Source: Adineta vaga (Eukaryota; Animalia; Rotifera). From it: DNA of 64,000 bases. The stretch covers positions 15,128,001-15,192,000 of the forward strand of contig CP075496.1 of the NCBI GenBank assembly GCA_021613535.1, written 5' to 3'. Shown one piece after another: positions 1,474 through 60,133 of this stretch; the stretch's first letter is position 1, and every line of letters begins with the position of its first letter. The notes beneath the pieces were generated by a model that had not been told where the DNA came from, made no database searches, and saw nothing but the letters and a program-made list of their open reading frames with translations. The position numbers and the translations under genes are program-made.

Positions 1474-1556
1474 TTTATCATCTTGAGGGTGTGGGTGTGT
1501 GTGTGTGTGTGTGAATGCAACAGACTCTCATTCACACCCACACCCTCAATGATAAA
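1474..1556. repeat. Head-to-head telomeric-repeat cassette #1
   Basis: TTTATCATCTTGAGGGTGTGGG(TG)n-spacer-CACACCCACACCCTCAATGATAAA. Terminates the Athena RT ORF. Confidence 0.9.
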
Positions 1557-1831
1557 TAAATGATGAAACTTCTTTAATTCTGAAAAAGCTTCTTGCGCAC
1601 GTTTATCCGAAGCAGACATACAATTATCTCGTAGACAATTGGTAACAGTATTTAACAACATTTCATATTGTTCCTGAATAATTTGTTTATTTGTTCGATG
1701 TCGAAATCGACTTTGACATGGGATGACATATTGAAGTCCTTTGATAAACATCGCCATTTGAGATGGTGTTAAATTCGATTGAACTTCGATAAATGGCGAT
1801 GATGCAGTGATTTTTGTATAAATAAGGGCAA

Positions 1832-1907
1832 AGCTCCGACGACGACGAATATAAGACTGATGTTGTTTCTTTATTCGTTGGATGTCGTCGGAGCTCCATC
1901 GAAAAAA
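1832..1907 (-). promoter_or_regulatory. Programmed -1 ribosomal frameshift signal (U UUU UUC plus stem-loop)
   Basis: Minus-strand TTTTTTC (1901-1907), a 5-nt spacer, then a perfect 12-bp stem AGCTCCGACGAC/GTCGTCGGAGCT (1884-1895 with 1832-1843). The -1 frame has no stop before the RT ORF. Confidence 0.8.
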
Positions 1908-2937
1908 GACGTCAATTTATTTTGAAGCATACTATTCAGACGTATTCGCATCGTTTCTATTCGGTTTTCAATTGCCTCATATAATTCTTTGATGGTCAAT
2001 TGTGATCGATGAGAATGATCGGATAGAAATTTTTGTTTCAATTCTGCTGCCTCCTTTACATGACCACGAATAATATTTTCCATTGTGGCTAATGTTAACA
2101 CCATAACATCACATTTAAACTGTGTAATTGTTTTCGAACATTGTGATGTTAAATTGGCACGTTCATCATCATTGATTACTGAAGATTCAAGCATCTCTCT
2201 AATATTGTCTACAGCTTGATCGACCGATCGATCTACGGACGATGGTAGACGACGTAATGAAATACGTTTTCGTAGGATTTCTTGTCGTTCTTTCACTTTG
2301 AGTTGAGCAGCTACTGATTGCCATATCTTTTTTGCTAGATAGATCTAGAAAGAAAATTATGTGAACATATCGTTCCTGTTGTGGTGGTCATATTCGATTA
2401 CACTTACTTGCTCTTCACTAGGATGTAATGAATAAAATTTTGTAATGGCTTCATGGTCATTGTAATTGTTTTGTAACATAGTCTTTTTATAATTGAATTT
2501 ATCTTTTAATCGACGTAGACCATTTTCAACACATTTATCCATCATTTCTGTTATTTGATGGATATCGATTGGAGGTGAACATTGTTGCGTCCACGTTAAT
2601 AAGTCGAGGAAATGCTCCTGTAATTCCATACCGGACGTAGTCATTTGTCGATGAATCATTTTTTGACGCTGTTCAATTGAATGTTTAGATGGAGTAATCG
2701 TTTGACATGTACAATGGTCTCTAGCAATACTTTTTGATATTTTCATAGACCATGTATCATTTTTTGTTTCAAAATCGTGAAGATTTTGCCAGAGATCTTT
2801 TTGCAAGATGACGTAATGTGATGTGCTAATAAGATGCATCATCTTTCGAACAGATTGTAGTTTCTCATTTGTATCTAAACTGCAGACGATTTTATGACTA
2901 TGTTCATTGATGTTCGATAGCATTTCTTTTAATTTTT

Positions 2938-3265
2938 GATGACTGGAGTATCGCTGCAGTACGAGTGGAGTAGACTGGAGTATGGCTGGAGTATGAGCTT
3001 TAGCGTTTCACTGCAATCCATCCATACTCCCATTGTACTCCAGTCTACTCCACCCCTACTCCAGCAATACTCCAGCCTTACTGCACTCATACTCCACCCT
3101 TACTCCACTCATACTTCAGACTACTCCATCCCTACTCCGGCAATACTGCGATCTACTCCGGCAATACTCCGATCTACTCCACTCGTACTCCATCTTACTT
3201 CAATCGTACTCTAGCGTACTCCAGAATTTTTTTGGAGTATTGGATTAGCGCTTTTTCCCCCTTGG
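2938..3265. repeat. Non-autonomous element fragment with GGAGTA/TACTCC motif arrays, interrupting Athena ORF1
   Basis: Multiple GGAGTA motifs followed by many TACTCC motifs (inverted orientation), ending TTTTTCCCCCTTGG. It breaks the ORF1 reading frame. Confidence 0.55.
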
Positions 3266-3905
3266 CGATACCCAACAGGAAACTGGTGGAGGTAATAAAT
3301 GGGGTATGCCCGTAGCTACCATAGCGTTATTGTTATTGTCAGTTGATGTGCCAACTAACGTTGAAAGCCACGGAGGTAAATCCAATGAAGGTATTGATGC
3401 CAGAGTCTTCGAATCGATGAGAGCTTTAAAAATCCAATAGAGAAACAGAACATTTCAATGAATAGGCTACTATTGAAATTAGATTACCTGTCGAATTGGG
3501 TTTGAGTGAGGATGTTTCTGAATGTAGGCATTCACAAGTATCTAATGAGTCAAACCTCTCATGATCGACATGTTCTATAGATAATAAACGAAAACAGAAG
3601 TGTACTTTTAGTCTCTAATCGAATAGAAAACTTTACTGATTTTTTTGGCAATGTTTTTGTTGGCTAATTCACGATTTGTCATGATAAGATGATGAGTAAA
3701 AAGAAGTCTTGGTAGTAGATATATGGATTTCTAAAATGTCAACAATTTGCAATAGCTTATTCACATATAGTTCACATTAGGAAAACACAAGTACAAATAG
3801 TAGATGTTCACAGACATAACAAAAGACGAAAATACAAAAATACAAAAAAAGAAAAGATCACAGTAAAATTACTTTGCACAAAAGTACTGGAAAATAAAAC
3901 CTTAA

Positions 3906-6064
3906 CCCTTTCGAGTCGATGGGGCCCACCGGTAGGCCCCACTATATTTTAACAAAAATTTTAATAGAAAAACACTTTCTTTTCTTTTTTTTAAGCGGGG
4001 GATCGCACGTAATGTGTCATCTGCTCTGCCTTCGTTATTGTTCGAATTATTTATTGCATACCGTGATGTTTCTCGTTAAAACAATCAAGACAAAAAAACT
4101 TGTTACAATCACAACAGAAAGTTTTTATTTTCTTCGTTGTTGAATGACACACTTCTCTTGATTGTTGTTCCCTGTTTTTCTCGTAACAACCAGCACAACG
4201 TCTTCAGACATTACTTGTAGATCCTGCCATTTCTTCGAGCTCGTGATCAGCTAGTTTGCGCTTCAACGAACTTGTTGATTGTTGTCTTGGATCAGGTTTC
4301 AGATCCTCGGATAATACACCAAGCAATAAAGAGCGCACAAGACTCTCACGAAACTGTAGGATGCTTGTATTGCCAATTGTATAGTTTTCTTTGTATATCA
4401 AATAGCTACTCACTACCGATGTACCAAATATCAATTCAAATGCCACCTTGTGATACCATTTGATAGATCGTCTGAGGCATGTATAGTATGCTGATAGCTG
4501 ATCAGATAAATCTATACCTTGTTTTCCTTCATTATAATCGAGGACAACTTGTGGTTTCATAATGCGCTCATTTAATTTATTAATTTTCTTGGTATCCACC
4601 ACAACTGCTGCATGGGATGGTTTTGTGGATATCATCAAAACGTCTCTTTTATCTTTCCACATGATTAATTTTATACCGTTTTTTGTTTTGGAGTCCGTAA
4701 ACTTCACGACGCTTCAGCTTTTTCTGAACGATTTTCTGACCTGATACAGCACGATTACTTCTGAACGTTCCAATCAAATACGTATCATTTTGCAACAAAT
4801 GTTCTGCAAGAGAAATACTTGTAAAGAAGTTGTCAGCGACTATAATACGATAACATCCCAAAAGATCTTCTGATAAATTCATTACGACTGTTTGAGAATG
4901 TCCAAGACCAGTCGTCGGATTCTGCTTTCCGGTACAAACGGTAAAATTCCAAGTGTATCCATTAGTAGTCGCTAGTTTGTATATCTTTACGCCATATTTG
5001 TGCACTTTTCCAGGAATATATTGGTTGAACAAAAGTCTGCCGTTCCATGGTACTATTGTTTCGTCGATAGAAATAGTTGACCCGAGAGCGTAAATCGACT
5101 TAAATCGGTCTTTCAATAAATCTAGCAGTGGTTTCAATTTGAACAACCTATCTTGGTCTGCATGCTTCTTCTCATTGTTAGAAAAATGATAAAATTTGAG
5201 AAGTAATTCAAATCTATCTCTTGACATTGTATTTTGAATGACTGCGGATCCATACAACTTGCTTTTGCTCCAACAGTAATCCATTTTCGGCATTTGTACC
5301 AATCCCATCTGAATAACAACTCCCAAAAATTGAAGCATTTCCTCATTAGTAGATGGTTTCCATTGAAGAGTTTGTGATCGTTGGCTAAGCTCTTTGGTCT
5401 GTAAGTGTTGTTCTGCATATCGATTAGTTTCGTGCACCATGAGGCAAACAATTTCGTCGGTGATGAAATGTCGGTAGCAATCAATAGGATTGATTGTATT
5501 ATCTTCTGAAGTTGTCGGTACTTCTTCGACAATTCCATGATCCTCCTGAAATTCAGCATCCGATTCTGATTCTATTTCATTCCAAACTTGTGAATCACGG
5601 TCATCATCAGAAATTTCTTCCTCGAAACTTGATGATTCAAATTGCATTCTAGCAAAATCATCATCCAAAGAACTGACATCACTTTCTGAATTCCTGCAGT
5701 CTTTAGAATCGGTTTCTTCAGACGACATGTAATTCAGATCCAAACTTCAATTGTTTTGATGCAAATGAAAGGAAAGAACCAAAGATAATGCTTCGAAAAC
5801 AATGCAAAAGAAAAAAATGGAAAATTCGTTTCGTTATCTTATTCCTAGTGAGTAATACGTACAAGAAAGAGAAAGGCAAACATGAATAATTATTCGGCTG
5901 CACGTGAAAAAGGACTGTCTATATACTGATACAAGGAAGAAAAAGAAAAAAGAATGGTAGCTCATACCGAAAAGATCAAAGAGTGCATTTATCGAAAGAT
6001 AAATGCACGTAAAAATGAATTTATTAAAGGTATTTTCTAAAATAATTGAATCGACTCGAAAGGG
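3906..6064 (-). mobile_element. piggyBac DNA transposon, complete ends, frameshifted transposase
   Basis: TTAA TSDs (3902-3905, 6065-6068) and perfect 15-bp TIR CCCTTTCGAGTCGAT. Transposase motifs SIDE, DNFFTS and GIDLSDQ, with a Cys-rich C-terminus near 4050-4200. Confidence 0.95.
4052..5743 (-). pseudogene. piggyBac transposase (frameshifts near 4680 and 4200)
   Basis: ORFs 4649-5743 and 4204-4707, plus a C-terminal zinc-finger segment (CAGC...CCDCNKFFCLDCF) in another frame. Confidence 0.9.
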
Positions 6065-7242: not shown

Positions 7243-7526
7243 TACGTTTTTACGAGAACTATCATGACATTGTTTTATTTTGTTATTTCGAGAGGTAGAA
7301 TATTTAAGTCAAGTAAAAACTGAGTGTAGGAGAGAGTAATGAAATAGTTCTCTTCACTTTGAATAAGTAGTATACTAAGAGTCAAAACCTAAGAAAATTC
7401 TAGTGCAAATGCTGTGTTTGTTAGAGATAACTGATTTGCAAACTTACATTACGAATTTGAATATATAGTTATGTAGATTTCAACGATTAGTACAAGTTCG
7501 ATAAACGTTGACAATAAATTATTATT

Positions 7527-8327
7527 ATGAATCACATCGATCATCTTATTATTAATACTCGAGATCGTCTTGATCAGATAGCAGCATATTTTAAACGTAT
7601 GGGATTTATCATCACACCACGTGGTTATCATTCAAGCGGTACAATAAATCACACGATTGTCTTCAAAACTGATTATTTAGAATTGTTTGGATACACACCA
7701 GACATACCATTGGGAAAGCGTTTGAGACTAGAAAAATTACCTATAGGGTTAGTAAATATGGTGATCAAAGCTGATGATATAGAACAAGTGCAAACGACAC
7801 TCATAGCACGTGACTCGACAACTATATCGCCATTGTCTTTGTCACGTCCGGTTAGTTTCGATAAAAATACAACGGCAAATGCCGCGTTTTGCGTAACACG
7901 TTTGGAACCTGCTCCTATTCCTGGTGTAGGTATCACCTACTATCATCATTTTAATCCAGAACTAGTTTGGCGTCCTGAATGGCAAACACATCCCAATGGT
8001 TGCATTGCTATGCTCCAACTTCATATCAACGTTACTGATCCCCATGCTGCAGTTCAGATATTTCGGCGTGCTATGGATATTGATAAATTTGTTAATACCG
8101 AATCAAATTGTGGTATTCTTTACTTGCCAACTTTCAAAATCCTACTGACCGTTGAAAACAATGAGCCGTTAGGTATGTACAAATTAACGTTCGCTATTGA
8201 TTCTATAGACAAGCTCGTAGCCGCACTTGAACAAAGCGATATAGAATATCATAAAAAAGATGGATGTATCGTTACTGACACAGAACCACATATCGGCTGT
8301 GTATTAGAATTCGAACCTATGCCATAA
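7527..8327 (+). CDS. Glyoxalase-like/VOC-superfamily protein (bacterial-type), intronless
   Basis: IDHLII...GF...PRGYHSSGTINH...YLEL and 'ELVWRPEWQTHPNG' motifs typical of bacterial glyoxalase-like proteins. Confidence 0.8.
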   Translation: MNHIDHLIINTRDRLDQIAAYFKRMGFIITPRGYHSSGTINHTIVFKTDYLELFGYTPDIPLGKRLRLEKLPIGLVNMVIKADDIEQVQTTLIARDSTTISPLSLSRPVSFDKNTTANAAFCVTRLEPAPIPGVGITYYHHFNPELVWRPEWQTHPNGCIAMLQLHINVTDPHAAVQIFRRAMDIDKFVNTESNCGILYLPTFKILLTVENNEPLGMYKLTFAIDSIDKLVAALEQSDIEYHKKDGCIVTDTEPHIGCVLEFEPMP

Positions 8328-9053: not shown

Positions 9054-12005
9054 TTAAGCCAAGAAAGACTCAGGAAAAAGACGTAGGAGATGTATCTCAT
9101 CCATATCATAAGAAGGAAGAGACGACAGAGAAGAGTGAGAAGAAACCCAACCCATACACCTTTCAAACACGGAAATATTATCGATATATCTTTTAGAAAC
9201 CCTTAAGCCTCTAATGGAAAAATTCCTATCAAACCACAATTGTCTAAAAGAATTCAAATATGTACGTTCAAGAACTAATTCACCATCAATAGAGTCAGAT
9301 AATGCAGCAAGATAACGATGCCAGTATTTATAACATCTATCTTCGAGAGAAAGTTCATCAAAAAAGATAAGCAAAGAGAAAATCATGAGTACCAAGACAA
9401 AATAAAGAACGTTTAAGACAAGTGAAGTAGAAATGACTAATAAGAGCACGTTGAAGATCAGTGAAGAGTGGAAAGATTGGAAATAACCAAGTGAAAAGAG
9501 GAAGAATATACGAAGAAAAAAGTGCACGCCTCAAAGACAACGAACTTTTACCATGGAATTTGAAAGAATTAACTAACAACAATCTTTTTCTAATTTTCAA
9601 CAATGATCTACAGATAAGCTTACCCCAACCTAACCTCGACGACATGAAATAACCTAAATATTTATATTCCTTAACCCAATTAAGATTATTTCCATCCATT
9701 TTAATAACAAAAGGTGGAGAACAAGGCGCACGAGAACTCCACAAACACTCAGTTTTTTTATAATTAATAGGTTGAACAGTGAGAAGACAATAGAATTCAA
9801 GTTGTTCGCAAAATAGCTTGGTTCTTTTTTCTAAATCTAAACATTGAGATGAAAATTTTACACCTATTCGACCAGCAAAAACAGCCGCTAAATCATCTGC
9901 AAAAAGATGAGACGACGACCACGAAAGAAAATTTGACATATCTGCATGATATGTTATGAAAACAGTAGGAGTTAGCGAACTTCCTTGTGGTCCACCTTTT
10001 TCAATATTAAACCATCTAGATTTTTTATTATTAATCTCAATATAAGCTCTACGATTACTAAGCCAAGCGCCAATCCAATTCACAAAAGAAAGCGGAATAC
10101 CCATCTGCCGAAATTTACCGATACAACCTTCACGTCACAACATATCAAAAGCACTTTTAAAATCAACAAAAATTGTTGTTACTGGAGAGTTATTAGATAA
10201 ATAACTATATAAATCTTCTAAAAACAAGAGAACTCTAGTTTGTAGTCTAAATTTTTCTCTAAAACCAGATTGATTATCAGGTAAAAGACCTCTTCTAAAT
10301 AGTACATCATGAAAACGAGGTAAAAATAGTTTTCACCAACTTTTTGAAAACAATCAATTAGAGAAATAGGTCTAATTTGGGATGGTAGACAGACAGATTC
10401 ATTTTTAGCTAGTAACAACATCCTAGTATCTTTCCAAGAATCAGGAAAAAAAGATGTAGAAAAAGAGAAATTGAAAAGATGAAGAAGAAAAGACCAATGA
10501 GATGAATGAAGAAAGTTAAACATATAATTATTTAAACCATGTGCATCAAGAGATTTCTTTTTCTTCCAATTAACAATCAATAAATTAATTTCATCAATTG
10601 AAACCGAAAGAATAGAATCATTTTTATTATCAAATTCAACAAAAGGAGCATCAACATAAGGATGAGGTCGAACTATATTTTCTGATTTACGAAAGAAATC
10701 CTCATAAAATCCGCTGCAATAGTACACAAATCAACCGAATCTTTTGTAACAACACCTGAAGAAGAAATAAAACCATTAAGAGATGCAGAAGAAGGTTTAA
10801 TGAAACGTTTAACTTTAGACCAAAAGGAAATAGAAATACTAGAAGAAGAATGTCTTAGTTGAAGAGCACGAGAAAGATTAGAAGAAACAAAACTTTTAAG
10901 TTCATGTTTAACTTGTTTTCTTAATAAACAAATATGTTTTTTTAATACACTATTATTCGTACGAATTAGACGAAAAGAAAGAGCACGAACATATGACATA
11001 AAACACCTAAGATAAGGAGGAATAGCAATCCTATATTTATGCAGTGGAAAAAATCTAGTACATCGAGCAATTAATAGTTGAAGAAACATGATATATTGGT
11101 TATAAGTTTCATTAAAACTAAGACCACACCAATTTTTTTTTCCAATACGAGAATGTATATTCAGTGAATAAATTAAAAATCTTCCAATGAATTGAATTTC
11201 CTTTAGCTTGCTTAAGAACTTTAAAAGGAAGAATAGAAAGAATTGGGCAATGATCACTAGTTGTATTAATATTCAATTTTTGAATTTCAATACCAGTTAC
11301 ATTCGAAAAAGCATAATCAATAGTACGAGTAGAACGAAAAGAAGTATAACCATCAGGAACAAAAGGAGAAAGAGACAAAGAATCTGCCCAGTCTAATATA
11401 CAATCAGCTTTAATACCATCCTGTTCAAGATCAACATTAAAATTACCAAAAAGTACACATCTATCAGAAAAAAAGGAAGATAAATCATTCCAACACCATG
11501 AACGACTATCCGGTGCATAAACCCCAATAAACCTACAATCCTCTTCAATTGAGACATCAATAACACAAACATTAGGAATGTTACAATCAATTCTTTTAAC
11601 CTTTATATCATTTCGAACAAGAATCAAAACACCACCATTTCTGTTTTCGCCTAACTGATAGAAAATTTTAAAATTAGAAAAAGATTGACGATAGAAGGAT
11701 AAATCTAATTTGCCTGTTTCCAAAAGAATAATAATATCCGTGTTTGAAGAAGAGATAATAAGAAGAACTTCTTGCCAACGAACATTAAACATAAGAACAT
11801 GTAAAGAAGAAAGATAATTCTTCCACAGAGAAAAACATGAAGAAAGGAGTGGATTACTTTCCCACTCAGAAAGAATAGAGCAAAACAGTTTAAAATCAAA
11901 TAGAGAAAGAGTATCCTTAGCATTATCTAAGAACAGATTTCTCTTACTATTTTGAGAAAAAGAAGGACAACTGAAGAAAGAAGGAGAAAGAGGCGAAAGG
12001 ATCAT
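9054..12005 (-). pseudogene. LINE ORF2 (AP endonuclease-reverse transcriptase), multiple frameshifts
   Basis: ORF fragments 11118-12005, 10673-11257, 10218-10727, 9358-10104 and 9054-9527 carry consecutive APE and RT motifs. Confidence 0.9.
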
Positions 12006-26863: not shown

Positions 26864-27056
26864 GTCAGGGTGTGGGTGTAGGTGTGAGTGTGAGTGTGGG
26901 TGTGTGGGTGTGGGTGTGGGTGGGGTGTGGGTGTGGGTGAGGGTGGGTGTGGGGGTGAGAGTGGGTAATGAAAAAGAAGATACCCACACCCACATCCACA
27001 ACCACGCACACCCTCACCACCCACACCCACACCCACACCCACACCCACACCCTGAC
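26864..27056. repeat. Head-to-head telomeric-repeat cassette #6 (longest, 193 bp)
   Basis: GTCAGGG(TGTGGG-like)n-TAATGAAAAAGAAGAT-(ACCCAC)n CCCTGAC. Cuts off the TPR gene. Confidence 0.95.
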
Positions 27057-32500: not shown

Positions 32501-35500
32501 CAGTATCATTGAGTATTGTATTCGTTCCATAAAAAGTTTAACACCAATCGACCATTCACTTCGAGCTGTTGATTCATTTCTAGCATTATTCTGTTTGAAA
32601 AATATAAATGATACAACATTTTATCAGCCATATATCAAATACAAAGCATTTCACTTAGCACAAAAACGTATTAAACGAGTGTTCGAAAATTTAAACGAGT
32701 TTTACTTTTCAACAAAGGATTGTATATCTTCTGCCAGTACAGATGGAACAGAAATTATCAATAAACTGGTTGAAATTAACGAGTTCGATGATGAAAATAG
32801 TCCGATAGATTCATCGGTAGTGAAAAATTTTCTTAATAATCTCTCGGCTATTATTGATGCAGTAAATCATTTACAATCTAAGAAAAGTTCATTTTTATAT
32901 CCTGGTAAGAAAAATAAATCCAGTTGTCGAGTTACTCTACCGTCATTTTTTCATAAAACAGCACTTACGGAACATTTGTTACTGATGGCTGATGATAATA
33001 CAAATAGGTTTACCAAAGTTCCTTCGTCATTTTTGGTCATTACATCTAGCTCCAGGATCGTACGAAGACACAAGTTATAAAAGATGTATTGAAATAGATT
33101 GTCCAAGTTCTGGTATGGCTTTATGCCACAACAGAACACCATTATTCGCTCTAACCTTTTGTTCACAATTAATACAAAAGATATACATTCAATTAATAGA
33201 TAGTGGTCAATGTATACTTGAAAAAGATGGTACATTCGATAGTAAAGAATGTATATATGAAGCTCAATTACTAATAGAATGCGTTCTTCAATTGCATAAC
33301 TGTCTTTGTTGCAAATACACCATGACATATTTGCTGATTCTCTTACATTATCTATTAAAAAGAAATCGATTGGAGAATTTCGCTGCCAGTTTCATCTGGA
33401 CATTGAAATCTCACAATTTAAAGGAACATTATTATTCAACGATCAATAGAATATCTGATGATCAACCAGAAGAAGAAGAAAAAGAAGAACAAGAACAAGA
33501 ACAAGAAAAAGTTTATAACGAAGTGAATATCATTTCTGATACGATTAATTTTGAAATGGATCGTCTACAAGAAATTTTAAATCAATCTCATCGACATGAT
33601 CAACATTTATACAGCAGTATTCTATCTCTTACTCATATATGCTGGTTCACGTCTGATGTGCCATTAAAATGGCAATTATTCAAAACAGCTATTTAAGCGA
33701 TGAATTTAATGTCCAATTCTATATTGAAAATACATCTATTAAGTGTCATATTATCACATCCTTGTGTGACACCATTATTATCAACAGCGATTTTTCAAAG
33801 TCGAACATTGCAAGATGAATTTATAATGTCTATAAAACAATTATCATTCATTGAATCTCCTATGATTACATCGTTATTAATAGTACGTTGTTTTCCACAT
33901 GCACACAATAATGACATTCGATCACAATTAGTTGATATACTTTTTAAAAAATTTCATAATTTGAAAATATCCTCTTCTGAAGAAGCTGAAATCATTGGCG
34001 AAATTTTATCCACCTGTTCTGCGGCCAACCTTGATCCATTATTTATTCAAGAGCAACAAAAACAATTGAGAATACGTAATATGAAATCTTGCATACATCT
34101 CAACAATCTCAATTCACCTATCAGCATACATTTTACTCCTAGTCAACAGACAACATTAGCAGCGTACCATTTAGTTGAACTCGCTCATGATGTACAGAGA
34201 CTAACATTTGGACAAAATATCTCAAGTTCGTCAGAACATTTATTAAATAGCGATGGAATTCTCACAGCATTACTAGCAACAAATATGACACAACAAATTC
34301 GATCAACCTCATTTGATCTAGAAAAAATCGATGAACTACTTCAATCTTTCCAGGAGGTGACTCCTAATGCGGTACAGATTGTTCAAGAGTGGCTTTTATA
34401 TGACAAAGATGAATAAAAAATACTGAGATATCATGCTGCCCTTCTTCTATCCTATTCTAACATTTGGTCTGTCCTTGGTATAAATACTTTATGTGATATG
34501 TTATTGAGTAAACTCGACCGATTTCGACAACGAACTGAATTTTTTATGCGAACACATACTATACCATGGCGGAGTTCGCAGCTTGGCTTAGATGTTTTTC
34601 TTGCACTAGCCGAAAAGCATTTCACTTTTGGAACCATATCTCCTTATGCGTCGGTAGTAACATTTTTGGCATTTGAAAAACTTCAGATAGACGACATTGA
34701 TCATCTTGTTGAATTGATGAAACGGGAAAAGCATCAGATAGAAGCTGAACTAAAGGTATCAGAGAGTAAAGATAAGAATGTTCAGATGAATCAATCTTAT
34801 ATGAAAGTGCCACATACAGTTTCAACACCTGTTCTTTCTCATTTTATCAAAATGATCGAAAGTGAGATTGATGAAACAATGAAAGCAGAAACAGAAACAT
34901 TGTCATCGGAAGCACAAGTACAATATATAGAACGTTTACTTAATGCGTCTATTTTTCACTGGACTACAGTGGGTACACAAGAAAGGATGTTTCTCGATAT
35001 GGCTCAACGTATTTTAAATAATATTACAATCAATGTCAGAATTCGTGCAATGATTGTATTTTCACTAGGTTATTGTAGCACTGGTGGTCTTCCTATTTTG
35101 CAAGCTGAAATTTTGAAGGTAGAATCTTTTGAACTACTTCCGATTGCAGTTAGCTCCTACTGTTACTGTATCCGTAGAACCTATAACGCTCAAGACGATT
35201 CAGCAAGAACTATTATACAAAGCTCTTTAGAATCTATTATTAGTCTACTGAACCATTCTTCCGATGATGTTGCCCAAGCTGCAGCTGATGGATTAGCTAG
35301 TGTATATGCAGCATGGGATGATGGTTTAAGCGTTCTTCTAGATACTCTTCAGCATGATCATATTCGAGCATACACCGCTCTATTAAATGCAACAAAAGAT
35401 TTGACAGACAATGCGATCAATCAAAAATGCGTACATCGAGCAGCTGAACTAATCGAACAATATTCATCATCTCTTCTACCACTTTTTCTTCTCGAATTAT

Positions 35501-35620
35501 ATCATAGTATCAAATATTTTCATACTTCAGTTCTTCTCATAAGATCACCGCCAGGATACCGAGGTATTAATGCAACTGTTGAAGTTGCAGCACTGCTTGT
35601 TCGAAAAATGCCTGCTGCTT
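29540..35620 (+). pseudogene. Large NACHT (STAND NTPase) protein with helical/HEAT-like C-terminal repeats
   Basis: Walker A GNPGSEKTT (G>E), Walker B ILDGLDE, IIVTSR, ASNPLLL and FLHLTFQEYF. At least 6 in-frame stops and 2 frameshifts. Ends abruptly at cassette #7. Confidence 0.88.
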
Positions 35621-35690
35621 GAGGGTGTGGGTGTGGGTGGGTGTGGATGAGAGTTTGCTGATTAAAGATTAAGAACCCACACCCACCCTC
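35618..35690. repeat. Head-to-head telomeric-repeat cassette #7
   Basis: CTTGAGGGTGTGGGTGTGGGTGGGTGTGG-spacer-ACCCACACCCACCCTC. Its TGA supplies the stop of the NACHT ORF. Confidence 0.9.
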
Positions 35691-37196
35691 TCTTGTCTAC
35701 GAGAAAGAAAATACTCTGTTGTCTCTCTTCCGTAGATATTGTTCGTTTAGTAGCATTCTAAACAGACAAAGACTATCAAAATACTAATGTGATGTAATTT
35801 GTAGCAGTTAATCAACTAGTTGTATTTTTCTCAGTTTCTACTCAGACTTTCGCTTGTATGTTCGAATGCTAACAAACATCTTCCGAAAAGTTGCAAGGAA
35901 ACGCGGTTATTTGTGTCAAAACGGATATGACAGTAAAAAGTGTATTATAGAGAAATATAGAAATGGTTAGCCGTAAGTGGTCGACTGGAGGGAGGCCAAC
36001 GAACGACCAGACGTGAATGTGTATAGTTACTAATAAAATAAAGTTTAAAAGTAAAACCGAAGTACTCTAAATCGTTTTATCTGAAGACGTGGATTACTAT
36101 TCTTTAGGAGTAACGCTGACGACGTACCACACTGTTAAGGCGAAAAAATTGAAAAGTATAAGGCATCCTGAACAATATTATAAAAGTATCGGATGCCTGA
36201 GAACCGTCTATTAATTACACTATAAAAGTCTGATTTTTACTCGGATTAAGTTTCTTTTTTGACAAACGATAGAGAGTGATAAAAAGTGTATATTATGAAC
36301 AGCTAGTCGTGAGTGGCCGACTGAAGGGAGGCCGACGAACGACTAGCTGTTTGCATTTGGATTTATCGTAAGCCCAATAAATGATAGATGTAATGCTTTA
36401 AGAAAGTTTCAAACGATTCGATTCCTCAGTGAAAATAATTTCCTTCTAAACGTTGAGAATAAAAACTTCATGCGGTTCAAGGTACATTAATGCTGATGTA
36501 GTACTGTGTACTCGCCGTAGGATTAGTAGACATATATATGCAGTTATATCATCTTGAAATTTTTCAGAAATGACTGACAATTCTAAGCGGTCACGTAATA
36601 TCATTCGCAACGTTTCTATAGAAAACTTCCTCCTTAGTTGTATTCTGAAACTTAAGTGTAACAAGTAATACTTTTTCTATAAACAATGATTGAAATTAAG
36701 GAGCATTTTTTATAATATACATATGAAATGTATACATATTCTTATACAACATACATCGCTATAAGGAGTATAGCTTCTTGTTAGCTTTCCTGCAATTAAG
36801 AAATCTGTGACATAAAATATAATCATAAATCAATTTCTTTTCATCAAAGCCATTCTGAATTTTTTGTCGAAAAGGGTCAGGTAATCCCTCGGATAAGCGT
36901 TACTTGTCATTTATTCACTTATGACACATTCGTATACCTCCTTATTTATCCTCTGTAGTCGACGCCACTCAGTTGAGTGCATTTATCCACCTCTATATAC
37001 ACCTAATGATAACCTGTTCATGAACTAACTTCTAGATTGATACGAAAAACTCGATCCGCTCGACATTAGATTTCTAAAAACGGGTGTTGAAAAATTCAAA
37101 TCAAGGAAAAGTTTGACTTGTCGAGTCTGGATGGCAGCAAAGAATCATTACATATAAATAAATAGATCGTAGCTCAGAATCTTACAAGAAAGTTAT

Positions 37197-37740
37197 TAGA
37201 CATCGTCTACGAAGTGTTCCTTTCAGTGGAGGGTTTAGCAACGTTTGCGTTGCGTTACTTGTGTTCAGACGTGTTCTCGGTGTTATTTTGCGCCTAGGAA
37301 ACCACCATACAAAGTTTGGAGAGTTTACCCATCATAAAAGCACTTGAGTGAAATTTCACCCAAATCATTTATGTCACCCACAGGACTTGAGGACCTATGG
37401 GTACCCCTATAATAAAGAACTTGAGGACACCAGGGTAATGCACATGAAGTCCATCAGACTGATATATCCTGTGAAAATGGCGAAAAACAAATTTGGGCAA
37501 AAAATCCCTGTACTCCTTCTCAGGGATGGTCTGGCCAGTTTCCAGTTTTTTTACGAGAACTCAAGCAATTCTTGACTGATCGGTCTCATCTTCGAACTCG
37601 ACTGAGATATTAATGAGGCTAAACTGTGTGGAAAATTTCAGCTCAATCGAACTCTCCTTTCGAAAGTTATCGGATAAACGGACGGACGGACACACTGACC
37701 GATTTTAGTAGTGTACTCACTTTTTGAGTACACAAAAAAA
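37197..37740 (+). mobile_element. Putative Helentron-associated (DINE-1/HINE-like) non-autonomous element
   Basis: (GGAC)n microsatellite at about 37680-37691, terminal hairpin GTGTACTCA-CTTTT-TGAGTACAC (37711-37733), then an A run. The 5' boundary is uncertain. Confidence 0.45.
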
Positions 37741-37815: not shown

Positions 37816-37948
37816 ATCTTGAGGGTGTGGGTGTGGGTGAGAAACAGTGGAATGATGACACCCTCAACCATCCTCACCCACACCCAACCCCTTACCCTCA
37901 TCCTCACCCATACCCACACCCTCACACCCTCACCCTTACCCTCAAGAT
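37816..37948. repeat. Head-to-head telomeric-repeat cassette #8
   Basis: ATCTTGAGGGTGTGGGTGTGGG-spacer-mixed CCCTCA/CCCACA/CCCTTA repeats-CCCTCAAGAT. Confidence 0.95.
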
Positions 37949-42300: not shown

Positions 42301-45300
42301 AATGTAAGAAGAGAAATCGAATTCATGCTAACAGTCATCTTTTACAAGAAAGAAAAACTACACTATTGGACTAGCTATGCAAGATTGCACTAACTGATAA
42401 TATTTGACCAGCTGGAACTTATGCAGGCTTGTCTGTTGAATCTGCATTCAACGTTCGCTCTTTTAATCTCACATCGAAATATTGACTAGAGACTTTGGCA
42501 CCTTATTAACAGTTTTGTCTTTCAGTTGAAATTCGAATTGAAACAAATTTTTTTCTGATCAGTTTCGTTTAAAGGATTTAACTAAGTAGGTATTCGGCAG
42601 GAAGCGGACGTTGTGAATGTCAGATACTCGGAGGATTCAAGGAAACCTAATGTTGCGATGCTAATACAATAGTATTTCTTGTATCATAATTCATGGCGTT
42701 CCGTTAAGTTTTCAAATATCGTCCACTTCGTGCTCCATGATACCGAATCATGTCTCGAGATACTTATTTGTTAAGCTTCTACCAGAGACGTAAAATACCT
42801 CTTGACAAGAGCCTTGTAAAATTCTAACTCTCTTCGATCCGTAGATGTGCCGTCAGTGCTATACTAGGCACCGGGAAATTTTTCTAAACGAAACTCCATC
42901 TCTGCCATGCATATCTGACGAATAATTTGCTCGAACATGAAAGAGGAAACGACTGATTAGGAGTTTCATAATCATTCTAATCAATGCTAACCACTAATCA
43001 GCTATTTCTTCCTTGATTATTTCGTTTTCCATTGATTTCCAAATCGATGTCATGCAGTTGAACGTTCATTTATAGGCCAATCGAATTAAACGGTTTAGAT
43101 GCCTTCGTTATGTTACCACTCGGAGAATGTTCTAAATGACAATTTTATGTAAAATTCAATATAAAAATTCAAATGCTTACAATGATACGATAATAGTTCG
43201 ATTCATTATCAGTAGTTTACAAAACATGCCTGTATTAGAATAGTGTTATCTGAACTTTATTGTTTCTCACATAAAACTGATTTTAGAATTTACAGCAACA
43301 ACAACAACAGTAACGACTTCAACAACATCATCAATAACCACAACGACGACAGTATCAACAACGACGACAACAACAACTGGTAAGTGATACGCTAAATAAG
43401 CTCGAGTAATCTTTGTGATATGTCAACTGCAGCTCAGCCACAATCATGACTTCATATGATGCTTGAAAAAAAGCTGTCTCTTGCACGGCATTCGTAGTTC
43501 TAAAATGTTAAAACGGGATTCCCGAATTTCACCAATAAGACTTTCGCCAATAGGACGTTCGCCATTGGCGAAAATATAATGAACATTCGCCAATTGGCGA
43601 AGGTTATAAGAGAATACTGGCGAAAGTACAGTGAGCTCTTTTCGACTATCATAGACGAATGTAAATGTCGGTTGCGTGTGCGGAACTAGAATATCAGACT
43701 GTACCTTATTGCTGTCCTTTATCAACTTCGTCGAAAGTACAGTGAACTTTCGCCAATGGCGAGCGTCCTATTGGCGAAAGTCTTATTGGCGAAGTTCGGG
43801 TATGCCGTTAAAACAAACGAGTTACATGAAACAACTCCGAATGTCATTTCCACACGGAACAGTGTTTAGTACTGTTGAATTATTTTGCCGAAAAAAGGAT
43901 TTCTACAGAATTAATTGCGAAGAGTGAGTAATCCATAACAATATATGAATGTTGACAGAATAAGAAAAAAAAGATGTTAGCTGCACATTGAATCGCAAGA
44001 AATCTCTTGTATATTTTGGACTAATATCGTAATTGTGATAATCAACTTCTGTTTTTGTATCATCAGGGTATACAAATAGTTTTTTCTTCTATTCAATAGC
44101 TTGCAATATGTTTTATGAAGAAACTCGTTACTTACTCGGTGCAAGACCTAAGGCACTCGCAGTTGCTGATTTGAACAATGATAACGTGTCCGATATTGTT
44201 GTATCGTATGTTTATTATAAACCTACTATTGAAATTATTCTTCATAGTGCCACTGGAACAATTCTTTCTCGAACAAAATATTACGATTGGACTCTAACAT
44301 ATTCGTTCGCCATAGGTGACATGAATGCCGACAATAGACTTGATATTGTTGCTACATACCGTAGTGAAAATGCTATTGGTATTGGTATTTCATTCAATAT
44401 GCACAACGATACTTTTTCCAGTCCAAGAATGCACGATTGTACATCAGTCAATTATTGGACGAGGTAGGATAAATACAAGTGTCGTAAGTAAAATTGTTAT
44501 ATTTGTACGTGAAAAAGACGTGCTCAATACCTGCATTTCAATATGAGTAGTTCTCTGCTTAAGCTGAAATTTTAAAACAAAGTTCTTGTTTGTGGAGATT
44601 ATCAAGATCGATCATATAGAAATATCCATAGGTCTGCAAAATAGTCGTCTCTCATAATCTAATACGCCTAGCTTTGCAAAAGCTATGCTATAAAAGAATC
44701 CATGGGCAGGTAGAGGCGAGCTCTCCAATTCAGTTCAGTAAACAATAGTCTGCCAAACATTTTTTGTTCATATTGGTTAGCAAAACTTCACACTGAGTAA
44801 TTAAATTGTCTTTGACTCAACTAGAACTTAGAAATACTCAAATTTACCAACACAACACTGCATATGACGGTGATTGAAAAGTAAAAACCCATCATATCCT
44901 ATTTTATAACGCTGTAGTATCCAGTGAAGTGAATGATATTTTTCGTTGGATAAGGAATCCAATACTATCTGTAAAAAGCTATCGATAGCTTTCGAGTACC
45001 TTGCAAGCAAACAAGGAAATTGCTTCATAAATACAGTTAAAAGAGAAGTCCATTCCCCTACAATAAAATAAATCTTAGCCTAGGAACATCCAAATTAGGT
45101 GATATATGATGGATATGTGGCACCTATGATAGGACGTTCGTACTACGAACTTCGTAGTAAAATTTTCAGCTAACTTCTACTACGCACAATCGAGATGCGA
45201 AGCGAGTCAAGGTCAAAAAAATGATTATTGCATCTGGAAGAACTCTCGCTGTCTTTATAGTATATATGATTCAGCATTTATTTTGTTTGAAAGAGTATTT

Positions 45301-48786: not shown

Positions 48787-48817
<31 letters not shown>

Positions 48818-50944: not shown

Positions 50945-51007
50945 TGAGGGTGAGGGTGATAGTAGTATATTATTACATCAATCTCATATACACTCTTATC
51001 CTTCAAG
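50945..51007. repeat. Head-to-head telomeric-repeat cassette #9 (degenerate, TGAGGG variant)
   Basis: TGAGGGTGAGGGTGA-spacer-CTCATATACACTCTTATCCTTCAAG. Confidence 0.5.
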
Positions 51008-52921: not shown

Positions 52922-53457
52922 TGAGCTCCTGTGTATAGCATAGATCTCGATAAGATAACACGAATCTACTATCATGCCCTTCGTCAGGTCTTCTACTGGA
53001 AGTTGTTCTTATCTTACTATACTTTTACTTGAATGCTAACAAGAAATCGTACACGGCTGCGAACTTGATTTTGAGCATGACTGCTGCATACCAGACAGGT
53101 CTGAATAGAGCATACAAACCTCAATAGAGCAAGCACAGACAAATTTTCATTCGAAAACTTAGCGAAAATCTCCGTGATATATGATAATAAATATGATAAA
53201 ACTCAACAGAAATGACTGATGTTTTCGAATGAAAATTTGTCTGTGCTCGCTCTTTTGAGTTTTGTATGCTCTATTCAGACCTGTCTGGTATGCAGCAGTC
53301 ATGCTCAAAATCAAGTTCGCAGCCGTGTACGATTTCTTGTTAGCATTCAAGTAAAAGTATAGTAAGATAAGAACAACTTCCAGTAGAAGACCTGACGAAG
53401 GGCATGATAGCAGATTCGTGTTATCTTATCGAGATCTATGCTATACGCAGGAGCTCA
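52922..53457. repeat. Near-perfect palindrome: arms of about 237 bp, 62-bp spacer
   Basis: 52922-53158 is the reverse complement of 53221-53457 with only a few mismatches. Confidence 0.95.
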
Positions 53458-54849: not shown

Positions 54850-55757
54850 CAGTGATGGGATCGGTTCGTGTTTTTGCAAAATCAAACCGAACCGAGAGGA
54901 TTTTCATTCAAACCGATCGAACCGAACCGAATCAAACCGAAATATAGTGCTTCTTCCAAATACTAGAAGTTTCTTTTTTAACTTTCGACTAAGAGAACCA
55001 TATAAAAAGTATCCATGTCTTTAAATCCTTTTGAGCGCTTTTTTCGGAGCCTTTTGCATCGTTTTCATAGCCAATTTTGAAAAATAATTGGATTTTGAGC
55101 TTAAAATGTGTTTAAAATTCAAAATTAGGTCTATAATCTCCGGGAGAAAGTTTGAACGGAACTGAAAACTTGGATATTTAAATTATTCAAAACTCATAGA
55201 ACACATTAGCAGTTACTTCCAAAACCTTTTAGCGTTGGCAACATTAGAGGCCTTGATGAATTTCTAATATGGAAGGATATTACAAAATTCAATGTGGTGA
55301 AAAATTCTAAGTGATCCTGTGAAAAATGATTTTATTGTTGATTTCCCTATCGATAGTGATAAATTAAAAATTCACTCCATCTAGCTAACTAATTCGACCA
55401 TCAAACAATTTGAATTTTTCAAAAATTTTGCAATAAGAGAAATCCTTATAAAGAAGCAAACAGAAAATAATAACAATTATATATCTCAATTCTCAAATCT
55501 TTGTAAAAGCGTAAAAACATGGTTAATTTTTCACTTCTGCATTGTTTGTAATTGAATTGCGAGACATTCCAATTAGACGAGTATCACTATTACAACTTCG
55601 CAGACGACATCTTTTCTGTTCTGACTATATGTTTCTCTGCTGTTCTTATTAATCAAGGTCAACAAAACATGTGTTCACTTTACTTTTACAAATACTTGGA
55701 ATCGGACCGACCCGAACCGGATTTTAAAAATGTCAAACCGAACCGATCCTATCACTG
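54850..55757. mobile_element. hAT-type non-autonomous element
   Basis: TIR CAGTGATGGGATCGGTTCG / CGAACCGATCCTATCACTG, 8-bp TSD CTG(A/T)ATGA, and subterminal AACCG repeats. Confidence 0.85.
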
Positions 55758-56180
55758 CTGTATGATGCTATGTCTTTTCATTTTCACTTACGAACAACGA
55801 TTCAGACTGCAATTTTCCACTCACTTAATTTTTCTGATGCAACAAATCTAGTAATACAATCTTAGATAAATGAAACAATAAAGTTAGTTCTCTTCGTGAA
55901 ATCTACTTACGACAATACGAAAGCAGATGTGAATAGTTATTAAATATAAGTATAGAATATAATAAAAACGTTGGGATTTAGGTAGACAATATGAAAGCAA
56001 GCTGCTTTCAGTAAGGTTTATTATTATCCGTGATAAGAGTTTAATAAAAAAAAGTCATAATTTTTTTATGGAAATGCATTTTCCTGAAAAGAAAAAAAAG
56101 CTTGACAGATGGAATCTTTTTTATTTTACTGAAGCTTTTCAGATGAATAAAATTCCATTTCATACGCATTCATTGTAATC

Positions 56181-59100
56181 ATGACCAACTTTTGTCGTCA
56201 GACAATATCTTCTCTGAAAAATTATCTTTTGAATCTCAATCTTTTCGAATCATCATCCAATAGTAATGAAACAGACGAACAACAACAACGTCGCTTCAAT
56301 ATTATTGTCACTCGTGTTTACTTAGTTGTTCTTATATTTCTTCTCATTTATTACAGTTTTTTAATATGGTCAGATTTGGAAAAAATCCACATAACACTGT
56401 ATAATTTCAATGAACAAGAGCTAAATGATTTGGCAATTGATGCAAATTGTCCTTGTTCTCGTATTTCACTATCATATGGTGAGTTTGTCTCATTAGAACC
56501 GATTTTACATCAAGTTTGCTCGAGTGATTTTGTGTCCGATCATTGGATTAAAGCCATTTATTCAAGTTCGAATTCTACGTATTTTAATTTGAATGACTTT
56601 CGTACATTTGGAAGTAGCCAATTTCAAGCTTTGGCTGGTTTTTGTAATCTATCACGTTCCTATCTTCAGCAAAATATTGATTCATTTAAACAAAGCATAT
56701 TTTTCAATTCACAAATCTTATCAAAGACTACTTTTCAGAAGGTAGTACAATCAGCTATTGTTCAGTTTCAGCAGACCGTACCTCAAACATTTGCAACGGA
56801 ATTAGATCTCATACGGCGACTAACAATAACCAATCGACTTGTATCCGGACTTCAAACAAATTTTATTATAAAATATGATGACAGTGGCAACTATCTTACT
56901 ACCAATACGTACAATAACTATAGTGAAACATCTTGTAACTGTCTATTAAATTTTCAGTGTACATCAAATGCTACCTATGATAGCATATTTGGAGCACCAA
57001 CACAGGAATATTCTGAGAACATCAAGATACTACGTGGAATATCTTCGGGTTGTCTACCGGTGGATTCAATTCTTTCATCCACATTGAAATGTTTCTACAA
57101 ACAGATATGTTTAGACGATCTTATCTCATTTTTTGCAACTGATAAACGATTCTTAGCAATGAAAATCAATAATAAAAGTCATTTTAGGTCATCTGCAACC
57201 GTACAATCAATCGTCGATCAATTGATGATAGAAGATTGGATCATCAATATATCTTATCGAAAATATTTTAATAGTTGTGCCGCTCTTTCATGTACTTATT
57301 CAATAAGAAAACGATATAGTATGGTATATGTATTAATAAAGCTAGTTAGTTTTCTCAGCGGCTTGATATTAGTACTCAGACTCGTGATTCCAGCTATTGT
57401 TCGATTTATAATAGATAAATTAAATAATGTACAATATCCAAAAATTCCTTGTAAGTAACTTGTTGTTATATTATATTCACTTGTGTACGATTTCGATTCT
57501 TAGTTTGTACTCGTATAATTCAAATAAAAGCGAACGTGAAAAAATTAATCATTGAATTAAATACATTCGAATCTTTTCCTTGTAATGATCGACAAGTTCG
57601 ATATCAACGCTATGCTACTCGATCGCGTATATTCTTGATCATTATTTCGGTAGCAATTGTAGCCGGATACATGCTGATGATTATATCAAGTCATCATCGT
57701 ACTATTATAAATCCAACAGAATCGGAATATATTAATCTTGAACAAACATATTCAACTGATCTCAATTGTTCATGTACTTCGACATCTATACCATATCTTT
57801 CTTTTATGACTATTAAATCTTGCAAACATCAGTTATGCTCCAGTTATTTGATTACGCCACACTGGATTAACTACACTCATTCCGAGAGTCATCTTCTTAT
57901 GTATATTCTTGACTATCGACAACAAGCTAGTAGTCAATTTCAAGCATTGGCAGTGCTTTGTGAACAGTCTCAAGCTGCATTCAATAATACACTCGATATT
58001 TTTCTTCGAACAGAGATTATTAATGCAAAAGTGATTCGCCAAGAATTATTTAAAACTAAAATGAAGCAACTTATCAAAAGTTGGAAATCATTAATGATTA
58101 GTCAGTTTAGACAAAGAATAGAGCTTATTCGACACACTACGTTTTTAAATCAACTAATGAATCGTAATAATATTTTCTTTCAGAGTGAAAGTACTGAAGG
58201 AAAAATAATTACGGAGCCTAGACGCTATGGTGACTGCAGTTGTGGTTTGAATCGAACATGCCATGAATCTATGAAAATAGACCCTTATAAGCCAAATGAT
58301 CATCTGCTAGTCTTTACGGTTCCTAATTTTTTCGTAGGTTGTTATCCTTTGGAAGCATTATTATTATCGACATTGGAATGTTTCTATAATCAATCATGTA
58401 TGGAACAACTTTATTCATATTATCATGTACCTCTCCACAAATCGTGGACTCTTCCCGCACTCAATTCAAGTCTTAGTTCATCTAACGAAACAATTGAATC
58501 AATGGTCAATCAATTAATGATTGCTGAGTGGTTCGAAAATGTTAATTTTAGTTCTTACTATAATAAATGTGCTCCAAAATCATGTATCATCGAATACAAT
58601 GCTCGCTATAGTCCCATGGCTATTATCAATATTGTTACTGGTGTTCTTGGTGGATTATCCCTTGGTTTACAAATGCTCATACGGTTGGCACTTTTTATTA
58701 TCGAAAAACTGATCGCTGGGTTTTCTTTTCGATCATTTTCAAAGTCGTTCTTAGAGCTTTTTGACTTCAGTGATGAGGAGAAATCGACGCATCTATTACA
58801 TGTTATTGTTGTCATAGTGATTCTTTATGCCTTTTACATGCATCAAGCATTTGATTCTGACGTAATCAAAAAAGAAATAAGGAAACCGTCACGAACCATC
58901 TATGACAATTTGATTAAACAATATCCTGATTCTCTAAACTGTTCTTGCTCAGAATTATCCATTCAATATTATTCGTTTCTTAATATAACTGCTCATTTTC
59001 ATCAAATATGCTCAAGAGATTTCGTTTCAGAAGCATGGAATGTAGTTAACAGTAATTCATGGGTTTTGTTTTTGGGTATTGAGAAAAACTATGCGTATGC

Positions 59101-59866
59101 AGGTTTAGCACAATTACAAGCGATGGTTTCACTTTGTAAAATGTCTCAAGACATAGTACATGATTCACTTGATCAATTATTAACAAGTCATTTGGTCAAT
59201 AATCAATTATTATCATTAACTTTATTGAAAGAACATATTCAAACACTTATTCATGATTTCAAAATACGAGTACCACAAACATTAATGAATATGTTTGCAT
59301 TGATTCGCATGACAACAACGGCAAATAAATTGATGGTCACATACGGTACCAGTTGGATATTTGCTTTTCCACCAACTAGAATTTCACATCATACTCTACA
59401 CACAGTTACAACCGTTACATCAGACTGTAATTGTGCTTTGACTCCGAACTGTCTTATAAAAAATATTTTAGGAATACAAATTGGTTGTTATGTAACTGAA
59501 GCTGTCTGTCAATCAACAATTGAATGTCCCTACGATCGACATTGCTTGGATTTAACGAATACTAGTCAACCATTAGATGACTCGATCGAACAGAGTCGTT
59601 TTCTTACGAATTCAACATTTGAATCAGTTTTCAATGAATTGATGTTAGAAAAACTTGTCCATAATCTATCGTACGATGCTTATTTTAATCGTTGTGCACC
59701 CTCATTATGTACTCGTTCTTCGTCTAACGAAAGTAATATAATCAAAGGATTTACAGCATTGGTTTCTCTCTATGGTGGTGTGGTAATCATTGGAAAACTT
59801 GCTGCAGTAATCATCGTCAAACTGTTACGATGTCGATCAACTAGGGTTATAGCAACAGCGAATTAA
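56181..59866 (+). CDS. Membrane protein of about 1210 aa made of three tandem TM-Cys-rich ectodomain-TM modules; intron 57451-57503
   Basis: GT-AG intron splices in frame. The motif set CxC...Y..F......HQ.CS..F....W ... GC ...LL.STL.CFY...C ... Y..Y...CAP..C.. TM(GG) occurs three times. Confidence 0.85.
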
Positions 59867-60065
59867 ACTATTCAAAAATATTGTTTTCTTTGCTTTAAAA
59901 ATGTTTGTCAATGTAAAACTAATTTGCTAATATTAACTCTTGCTTCTTTAACAATCGATTTTGATGTCTAAATAAGTTGAAATACTGTAGATAATATTTA
60001 GAGTTCCAATCACAAGTATAAACTTAACAAAGAAAACTAGTGTCGTACATAGTTAGCAAGCCATA

Positions 60066-60133
60066 TTGAAGTGAAGAGTGGGTGTGGGTGTGGGTGAAGA
60101 AAAGAGTAATACTCACACCCACACCCTTCAGAT
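60066..60133. repeat. Head-to-head telomeric-repeat cassette #10
   Basis: GAGTGGGTGTGGGTGTGGG-TGAAGAAAAGAGTAATACT-CACACCCACACCCTTCAGAT. Cuts the neighbouring transposase. Confidence 0.9.

Follow-up and report, generated by a model that had tools for sequence, protein, structure and literature searches.

The window analyzed here, 64 kb of the bdelloid rotifer Adineta vaga (contig C4, positions 15,128,001 to 15,192,000; 33% G+C), lies 33 to 97 kb from the right end of that contig (15,224,634 bp) and contains nine cassettes, each composed of a G-rich arm of telomere-type repeats (G-arm), a short spacer, and a C-rich arm (C-arm), together with one lone G-arm. The cassettes are seams of repair or rearrangement, made of two independent telomere-type tracts that have a templated start and are separated by a directionally copied filler. 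In our preferred explanation, to which we assign a probability of roughly 0.55, each cassette joins two ends that had acquired telomere tails de novo, meeting head to head through a short templated filler.

Organization of the cassettes

A tolerant 6-mer scan of the 64 kb identifies 11 G-type and 9 C-type telomere-type tracts, compared with 0 to 4 (mean, ∼1) in 20 shuffles, and every seed pair is in G-to-C order, with none in C-to-G order. The original prediction listed ten such sites of a single polarity and variable arm length; all ten are present at the positions it gave, no reversed pair occurs in the window, and the arms range from ∼11 nt up to ∼100 nt (at 26864-27056). The site at 17654 that it called a half cassette is a genuine lone G-arm and, as it also stated, there is neither a target-site duplication (TSD) nor an open reading frame (ORF) belonging to a cassette. 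Folded as DNA, each cassette forms a far better hairpin than its shuffled counterparts, with z scores of -4.3 to -7.7. The cassettes and the segments that they delimit are as follows.

1474-1556, no strand: cassette; G-arm at 1484-1499 continuing into (TG)n, spacer, C-arm at 1533-1548
15943-16001, no strand: cassette upstream of a TLDc-domain gene, in a stretch silent in RNA; C-arm decayed; an independent DNA contig spans it with no differences
17654-17669, plus strand: lone G-arm (TCTTGAGGGTGAGGG), the left seam of the duplicated segment 17658-19941
17658-19941, minus strand: gene-sized segment with a P450 gene having three confirmed introns; G-arms at both ends; 94% identical copy at C3:17.74 Mb
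19920-19985, no strand: cassette with full termini CATCTTGAGGG...CCATCAAGATG; C-arm decayed; hairpin z, -4.9
20998-21065, no strand: cassette with spacer ATCTTCTTTTTCATT; C-arm with CCCGCA units missing from the G-arm
26864-27056, no strand: longest cassette; arms of ∼100 and ∼75 nt; outer ends GTCAGGG and CCCTGAC
35618-35690, no strand: cassette at a homology breakpoint; its first unit (TTGAGGG) holds the stop codon of ORF 34498-35622
35691-35991, plus strand: homology block matching C2:15.938 Mb and C5:15.716 Mb, both of which continue upstream cassette-free
37816-37948, no strand: cassette; G-arm of 22 nt, C-arm of ∼105 nt with many variant units; full termini ATCTTGAGGG and CCCTCAAGAT
50945-51007, no strand: decayed cassette (TGAGGGTGAGGG ... 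TCCTTCAAG), with the decay in the C-arm
60066-60133, no strand: cassette truncating a Tc1-like transposase ORF; hairpin z, -5.6
60134-60740, minus strand: piece of a Tc1-like transposase that covers residues 38-241 when aligned with a homolog of 318 residues; the cassette cuts it at WPGNS

Contigs from four public runs were aligned to positions 15600-21500 of the window. A DNA contig from a 2013 run crosses 15804-17751, covering one cassette and the lone arm, with 0 differences; the cassettes are therefore not the assembly artefact that the original prediction had considered. DNA depth rises 3- to 8-fold at 19920 and 20998, many contigs diverge exactly within 19919-21003, and loose contig ends are numerous at 19919-19921; the depth jump and the divergence indicate a multicopy repeat with a sharp outer edge. 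At 21045 one contig is a single unit (6 nt) shorter than the window, a difference suggestive of allelic slippage.

The minus-strand P450 gene (17902-19674) has three ordinary introns, at 18223-18283, 18602-18651, and 19022-19114, which are confirmed by RNA-like contigs of two studies; in this gene the contig of one run lacks 21 nt at 18045. No RNA joint lies at a cassette edge within 15600-21500, where three of the four cassettes are in silent DNA. The GT...AG symmetry of the termini had suggested an intron or introner, an idea that was dropped because the RNA-like contigs splice elsewhere. No hammerhead was matched at E values of up to 1 in the window and of up to 0.1 in 20 metagenome contigs, and Rfam returned only sub-threshold generic hairpin (microRNA-model) matches in the window and nothing in the 20 metagenome contigs.

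Abundance and polarity in the genome

The same organization extends across the genome searched, 100.8 Mb in six contigs. The pattern TGTGGGTGTGGG-N8-60-CCCACACCCACA has 145 matches versus 4 in the opposite polarity in a symmetric test, and TGAGGGTGTGGG-N8-60-CCCACACCC has 207 plus 307 matches (514 versus 0 in the control), a strong G-to-C excess that agrees with the polarity originally predicted. More than 85% of the arms are paired. On C1 (18.15 Mb), the positions among the matches listed are 0.1 to 2.2 Mb, 11.7 to 13.8 Mb, and mostly 15.0 to 17.8 Mb, and a 16-mer of the leader described below occurs at scattered internal sites as well. The right end of C1 in the assembly has no terminal repeat tract; the sequence there (L051, C1:18144348-18146847) is a tandem array with a period of ∼526 bp and TGGGTGAGGGTGTGGG in each unit.

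Arm ends and the leader

A total of 97 arm ends were anchored on their first GGG. The most common bases outward from it are A (73 ends), G (70), T (69), T (58), C (33), T (42), A (44), and C (27), giving an end consensus of (C)ATCTTGAGGG whose information fades outward over 8 nt. This matches the outer terminus of the original prediction, with A preceding GGG in 73 of the 97 ends and the complete ATCTTGAGGG in 24. Inverted termini are present, yet their consensus decays gradually, where the ends of a miniature inverted-repeat transposable element (MITE) would be sharp. The arms open at the flank with a fixed leader, (C)ATCT-TGAGGG, so that the outermost unit is nearly always TGAGGG, with the inner units mostly TGTGGG; genome-wide, the leader ATCTTGAGGGTGTGGG has 474 copies versus 12 of the TGTGGG-first version, ATCTTGTGGGTGTGGG, with both strands equally represented. 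The inner arm ends are also nonrandom, reading GGGT| in 29, GGGTG| in 2, GGGTG[TA]| in 25, and GGGTG[TA]G| in 22 of 96.

Within a cassette the arms do not mirror each other. Their lengths are 22 versus ∼105 nt at 37816 and 24 versus 170 nt in cassette L006, and at 20998 TGTGGG units stand opposite CCCGCA units. The left end of C4, the sole true terminal array in reach, is built of CCCACA, CCCTCA, and CCCA, the same unit variants as in the arms, which carry the repeat dialect of a real terminal array (TGTGGG with TGAGGG and TGGG variants).

The orientation of the arms would suit a programmed signal for chromosome breakage and telomere seeding, as a cut in the spacer would give two correctly oriented telomere seeds, and the frequent intergenic position would also suit hairpins acting as boundaries or insulators between genes. 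Such roles, the first of which was among the readings first proposed, are extremely unlikely: there is no conserved motif outside the arms in the 97 arm ends, cassettes cut coding sequence, many copies are decayed, and DNA contigs (contigs rather than raw long reads, one of them covering two sites) pass through the cassettes.

Spacer families

Loci with the same spacer have homology confined to 34 to 69 bp, and their flanks are unrelated. Among 48 nonredundant cassettes, 18 spacer pairs score 12 or more versus 0 of 1,128 shuffled pairs, in a set that was partly chosen by spacer and in which the unbiased members are the 20998/26864 pair and a family-a copy just outside the window. The 20998 spacer, ATCTTCTTTTTCATT, is the exact reverse complement of that at 26864 (15 of 15 bases identical, inverted). 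Roughly 20 of the ∼45 cassettes among the matches listed for the 145-match pattern fall into four spacer families. An example of a family sequence is GUCAGGCUAUACUCUUA. Most members of family a open with GGGT|TAAGAG (7 of the 11 true ones, and likewise among the matches listed), but the far end varies widely, with examples such as ...CCTA, ...CTGAC, ...CTGCC, ...CCACAATCTC(ATCC), and ...CTGACATACATTCCCCC; families d and e similarly combine a fixed start with a ragged end. One fixed side and one ragged side fit synthesis from the 3' end of one G-tract, rather than a preformed symmetric element or random filler.

A preformed element nonetheless has features to commend it. A nonautonomous hairpin "patch" (G-arm, family core, and C-arm, as cDNA or excised DNA), itself replicating and captured whole by end joining at breaks, would fit the near-constant pairing of the arms, the small number of spacer families at loci with unrelated flanks, a terminal consensus that could be nibbled back, a family-a cassette that fills a deletion junction, and the presence of cassette sequence in RNA-like contigs from other loci. 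We regard it as unlikely: besides the spacer being fixed on one side only, the arms within one cassette are up to 7-fold unequal and differ in their unit variants, an identical flank-plus-G-arm junction carries different spacers in two paralogs, and the leader is also present on lone arms and is kept across species while the spacers differ, as described below.

Homology breakpoints at the cassettes

Breakpoints were located by comparison with paralogs rather than with alleles or orthologs. From 35691 onward the sequence matches two paralogs, C2:15.938 Mb and C5:15.716 Mb (L046 and L047), which stay homologous to each other upstream and are cassette-free there; the left flank of the 35618 cassette is the unrelated orphan ORF 34498-35622, whose protein matched only itself. 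Homology of the 20998 left flank to C2:14953014-14953250 stops at 21000, and at 26864 a minus-strand TPR-like ORF enters the cassette without a stop codon. The copy of segment 17658-19941 at C3:17.74 Mb (94% identity) and the segment itself each begin immediately beyond a G-arm, whose length differs between the two, and finish at ...CCATAATC|ATCTTGAGGG, with spacers, C-arms, and outer neighbors all different. In paralog L069 the junction corresponding to 17654 has a G-arm of another length and another upstream neighbor, and its counterpart of the 19920 cassette shares the junction and G-arm and differs in spacer, C-arm, and right neighbor.

The duplicated pair L034 and L035 is similarly informative, in that a 58- to 68-nt cassette in L035 replaces ∼800 bp of L034. 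A second cassette with the L035 spacer lies against one repeated transposable element (TE), which is truncated at two points separated by 105 nt. The sequence at either truncation is ...CTT|GAGGG, with CTT as microhomology that in L034 is part of the element itself. At the first L035 junction, TCATCTT is present and is missing from L034, so the leader arrived with the arm.

The Tc1-like ORF at 60134-60740 also aligns to residues 50-245 of a 322-residue homolog, and its identity is established by homologs and pairwise alignment; a Pfam search of the fragment gave no match. Six paralogs of this ORF lose DNA homology at 60127, with nothing resuming beyond the cassette. The last flank bases at this seam, ATCTGAA, are similar to the leader, which suggests addition where an end can pair with the template.

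No flanking direct repeat was found in any of ∼50 copies, and no paralog comparison gave a collinear empty site, homology ending at the cassette without resuming on the far side; the clean insertion with a TSD of fixed length that the original prediction had envisaged as a possible outcome was likewise not seen in any of them. A ∼320-bp repeat at 20280-20603, on the other hand, behaves as an ordinary insertion when compared with a paralog at C3:18.438 Mb. (The genome has dozens of copies of this repeat, a further one of them at 27432-27753 in the window.) The two flanks of a cassette have separate histories.

These comparisons bear directly on another of the initial readings, a MITE or foldback-type DNA transposon with telomere-like arms, the copies of which would later serve as recombination hot spots and so come to lie at the edges of homology blocks. 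As in Foldback elements, the cassettes have inverted, hairpin-forming arms of variable-number tandem units; there are hundreds of copies, read depth shows a sharp repeat boundary, and a second foldback-like array is present at 2939-3223. They differ from such elements in having no TSD, no collinear empty site in any comparison, and noncollinear flanks; in addition, the terminus fades gradually and no transposase with these ends was seen. The reading also fails to explain a unique inverted duplication at cassette L001, where a 110-nt flank is repeated inverted around the cassette and is found nowhere else in the genome. A transposon of this type is very unlikely, and a MITE with 110-nt arms at L001 was rejected, the flank being single copy.

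The L001 duplication is better suited to a different route, in which a single healed end turns back on itself or joins its sister chromatid (a hairpin-capped or breakage-fusion-bridge event), the C-arm copies the G-arm, and later breaks trim the inverted flank. Mirror symmetry reaches into the flanks at 1474 (TTTATCAT and ATGATAAA), where the DNA hairpin has a folding energy of -27.8 kcal/mol (z, -7.7), and at 26864 (GTCA), and hairpin potential is strong. As a general explanation this is quite unlikely, since most cassettes have unrelated flanks, arms such as those at 20998 and 37816 are not mirrored, and the spacer families are left unexplained.

The remaining initial reading, scars of breaks patched with telomere-type repeats and then rejoined, is favored by the ends of homology blocks, the truncated transposase gene, and the ∼800 bp of paralog replaced. 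It needs amending in one respect, in that the patches are not random and have a fixed templated leader and a few copied spacer families.

A model for cassette formation

In the favored seam model, a telomerase-type reverse transcriptase would prime on a broken 3' end through a few bases of microhomology. Its template would read 5'-CCCACACCCUCAAGAU-3' and be entered at a variable point, giving ...CTT-GAGGG first and TGTGGG in later rounds. Because two G-tails are unable to anneal, a short templated filler would be added to the ...GGGT-3' end of one of them and persist as the spacer. The filler may derive from a small set of RNAs with an ACACCC-type tail (telomerase RNA or Athena/Terminon-like) or from an existing cassette; if from telomerase RNA, it would be RNA read past the template, by analogy with the vertebrate junctions discussed below. 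Synthesis would then move onto the other G-tail and produce the C-arm. Serial events of this kind, mostly in chromosome ends that tolerate rearrangement, would leave gene-sized segments, each with a C-arm at its left end and a G-arm at its right. The model accounts for the polarity, the absence of TSDs, the unequal arms, the leader, the spacer families, and the gene-sized pieces in subtelomeres.

Several observations weigh against it. More than 85% of arms are paired, which requires that nearly every joined end was healed, whereas pairing is automatic for a preformed hairpin, and a few spacer families dominate, as they do in a mobile family. A putative telomerase RNA as source of the leader is only inferred, and neither a hammerhead nor any other Rfam family turned up at the cassettes or in their vicinity. 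The breakpoint comparisons use paralogs, and the position of cassettes at block edges could also have arisen if older ones recombined ectopically. Where mirror symmetry enters the flank (L001, 1474, and 26864), a foldback or sister-end route is likelier. Finally, the window has a second head-to-head array with an unrelated unit, at 2939-3223, which hints at a more general foldback process; in it, an 11-nt unit with CTGGAGTA is present in ∼5 copies, followed by a center of 27 nt and then ∼18 copies of units that contain TACTCC, and the array overlaps ORF 2936-3214.

A broader and more tentative form of the seam model, possible but doubtful, is that bdelloid chromosome ends are extended and rebuilt by the serial capture of DNA fragments capped at both ends by telomerase, with the caps joined head to head through an RNA-templated bridge. 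The cassettes would then be ligation seams, and the leader and fixed-start spacers would spell out the template and 5' flank of one or more bdelloid telomerase RNAs or Athena-type RNAs. The captured fragments could be pieces of shattered chromosomes or of transposons, or possibly foreign DNA.

Relationship to known systems

A close parallel is in vertebrates, which have short interstitial telomeric sequences (ITS) at double-strand breaks, where telomerase-made repeats can adjoin a copy of telomerase RNA (TERC); the vertebrate cases, among them those called TERC-ITS, number 41 loci in 22 of the 30 genomes searched (Nergadze et al. 2007, PMC2246262; Sola et al. 2021, PMC8537989). Both systems have telomere-type repeats at repair junctions, a fixed flanking sequence (ascribed in vertebrates to telomerase RNA reverse transcribed beside its template), junction microhomology, and no TSD. 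A TERC-ITS is recognized by a repeat tract that is missing from the homologous locus and marks a repair junction, and the alignments indicate such a tract at L035/L034, at the 35691 block, and at the transposase fragment. The vertebrate cases differ in being rare and in having a single one-directional tract, whereas here the loci number in the hundreds, two tracts oppose each other across a spacer, and the spacers recur as families. The adjoining fragment in TERC-ITS is colinear with the telomerase RNA beside the template; the leader ATCTTGA and the fixed-start spacers, judged from the cassettes alone, fit a similar arrangement.

In A. vaga itself, a 2026 study of A. vaga lines reports telomeric repeats and Athena fragments at fresh deletion breakpoints and proposes transient neotelomeres that leave scars (PMC13564844). 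The organism and the presence of telomeric repeats at breakpoints are the same; the difference is that the repeats there are soft-clipped and at a few breakpoints, and paired head-to-head arms, a leader, and spacer families are not described. It was already known that bdelloid subtelomeres contain short TGTGGG tracts at interstitial positions and that truncated copies of Athena are capped by repeats (PMC7943196, PMC8494291, PMC2861651, PMC6431247). Athena/Terminon elements resemble the cassettes in being subtelomeric, with short telomeric stretches between units, ACACCC/TCACCC tails that pair with G-overhangs, and captured host genes (PMC6431247, PMC8557442). Their junctions differ in having the same polarity on both sides and a 5'-truncated Penelope-like element (PLE) with a 3' hammerhead, whereas the cassette arms are opposed and no hammerhead was matched; only 17658-19941 has G-arms on both sides, and it holds an intron-bearing P450 gene. 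The head-to-head polarity, G-strand to C-strand, recalls instead a fusion-type interstitial telomere. Arrays of that type, such as that at human 2q13, are head to head and result from telomere-telomere fusion. They are single, large, whole-chromosome events, in contrast to the hundreds of tiny junctions with a templated spacer described here. No account of opposed pairs that have a leader and families of spacers turned up in the literature searched, which was incomplete, and an earlier one may exist.

Bdelloids withstand massive fragmentation of their chromosomes and accumulate foreign genes close to the telomeres, and a set of hundreds of datable seams would bear on the chemistry by which ends are joined. 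The seam signature, a leader with two independent repeat tracts and a directional templated filler, would make the formation and loss of neotelomeres (PMC13564844) countable in existing irradiation and mutation-accumulation data. It also gives a concrete, testable guess at the telomerase RNA template and allows a test of whether horizontally acquired genes and transposon fragments enter as telomere-capped pieces. Even if the cassettes turn out to be no more than a hairpin element trapped in breaks, they would retain value as markers of where breaks once occurred.

Other bdelloids and metagenomes

Public metagenome contigs were scanned for the leader ATCTTGAGGGTGTGGGTG, giving at least 120 stretches and 68 usable matches. 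Of these, 23 are in GC-rich contigs, have no longer arms, and are chance matches. The other 45 are in AT-rich contigs and have longer arms, with 3.5 C-arm motifs in the next 100 nt versus 0.09 upstream. In the clearly paired examples, as judged by eye, CCCTC(A) is the usual end of the far arm, an arm that had no role in choosing the contigs, and AGAT comes next in some cases. The flanks of one such contig are 67 to 81% similar to this genome, and other bdelloids therefore share the architecture and leader, with different spacers. Armless matches were also considered as telomerase RNA candidates and rejected as chance, the recurrent contexts examined being GC-rich coding sequence. Around Tc1-like genes of Adineta ricciae and Rotaria, at loci not known to be subtelomeric, no head-to-head pairs were present. 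One A. ricciae locus (L082) has direct repeats at 7495-7541 and 11806-11859 flanking a Tc1-like gene, each with two same-polarity C-type tracts around TGAGAGAGATCCCTACTG.

Other features of the window

The window also contains a variety of mobile and accessory sequences. A minus-strand piggyBac-like transposase ORF is at 4652-5743, and a minus-strand pair related to long interspersed nuclear elements (LINEs), with an apurinic/apyrimidinic (AP)-endonuclease ORF and a reverse-transcriptase ORF, is at 9361-12005. A plus-strand, intronless glyoxalase-like ORF (7527-8324) and a minus-strand ORF with an NAD:arginine ADP-ribosyltransferase domain (27668-28630) are typical subtelomeric cargo. Positions 37262-37740 are a truncated 480-bp piece of a ∼980-bp repeat with more than 40 copies, the end motif of which, AGTTTCCG(C/T)ATTT, also adjoins cassettes in L034 and L035. 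An inverted repeat at 52922-53457 has 237-nt arms that are 98% complementary and a 62-nt loop, and a weaker inverted repeat is present at 43506-43815.

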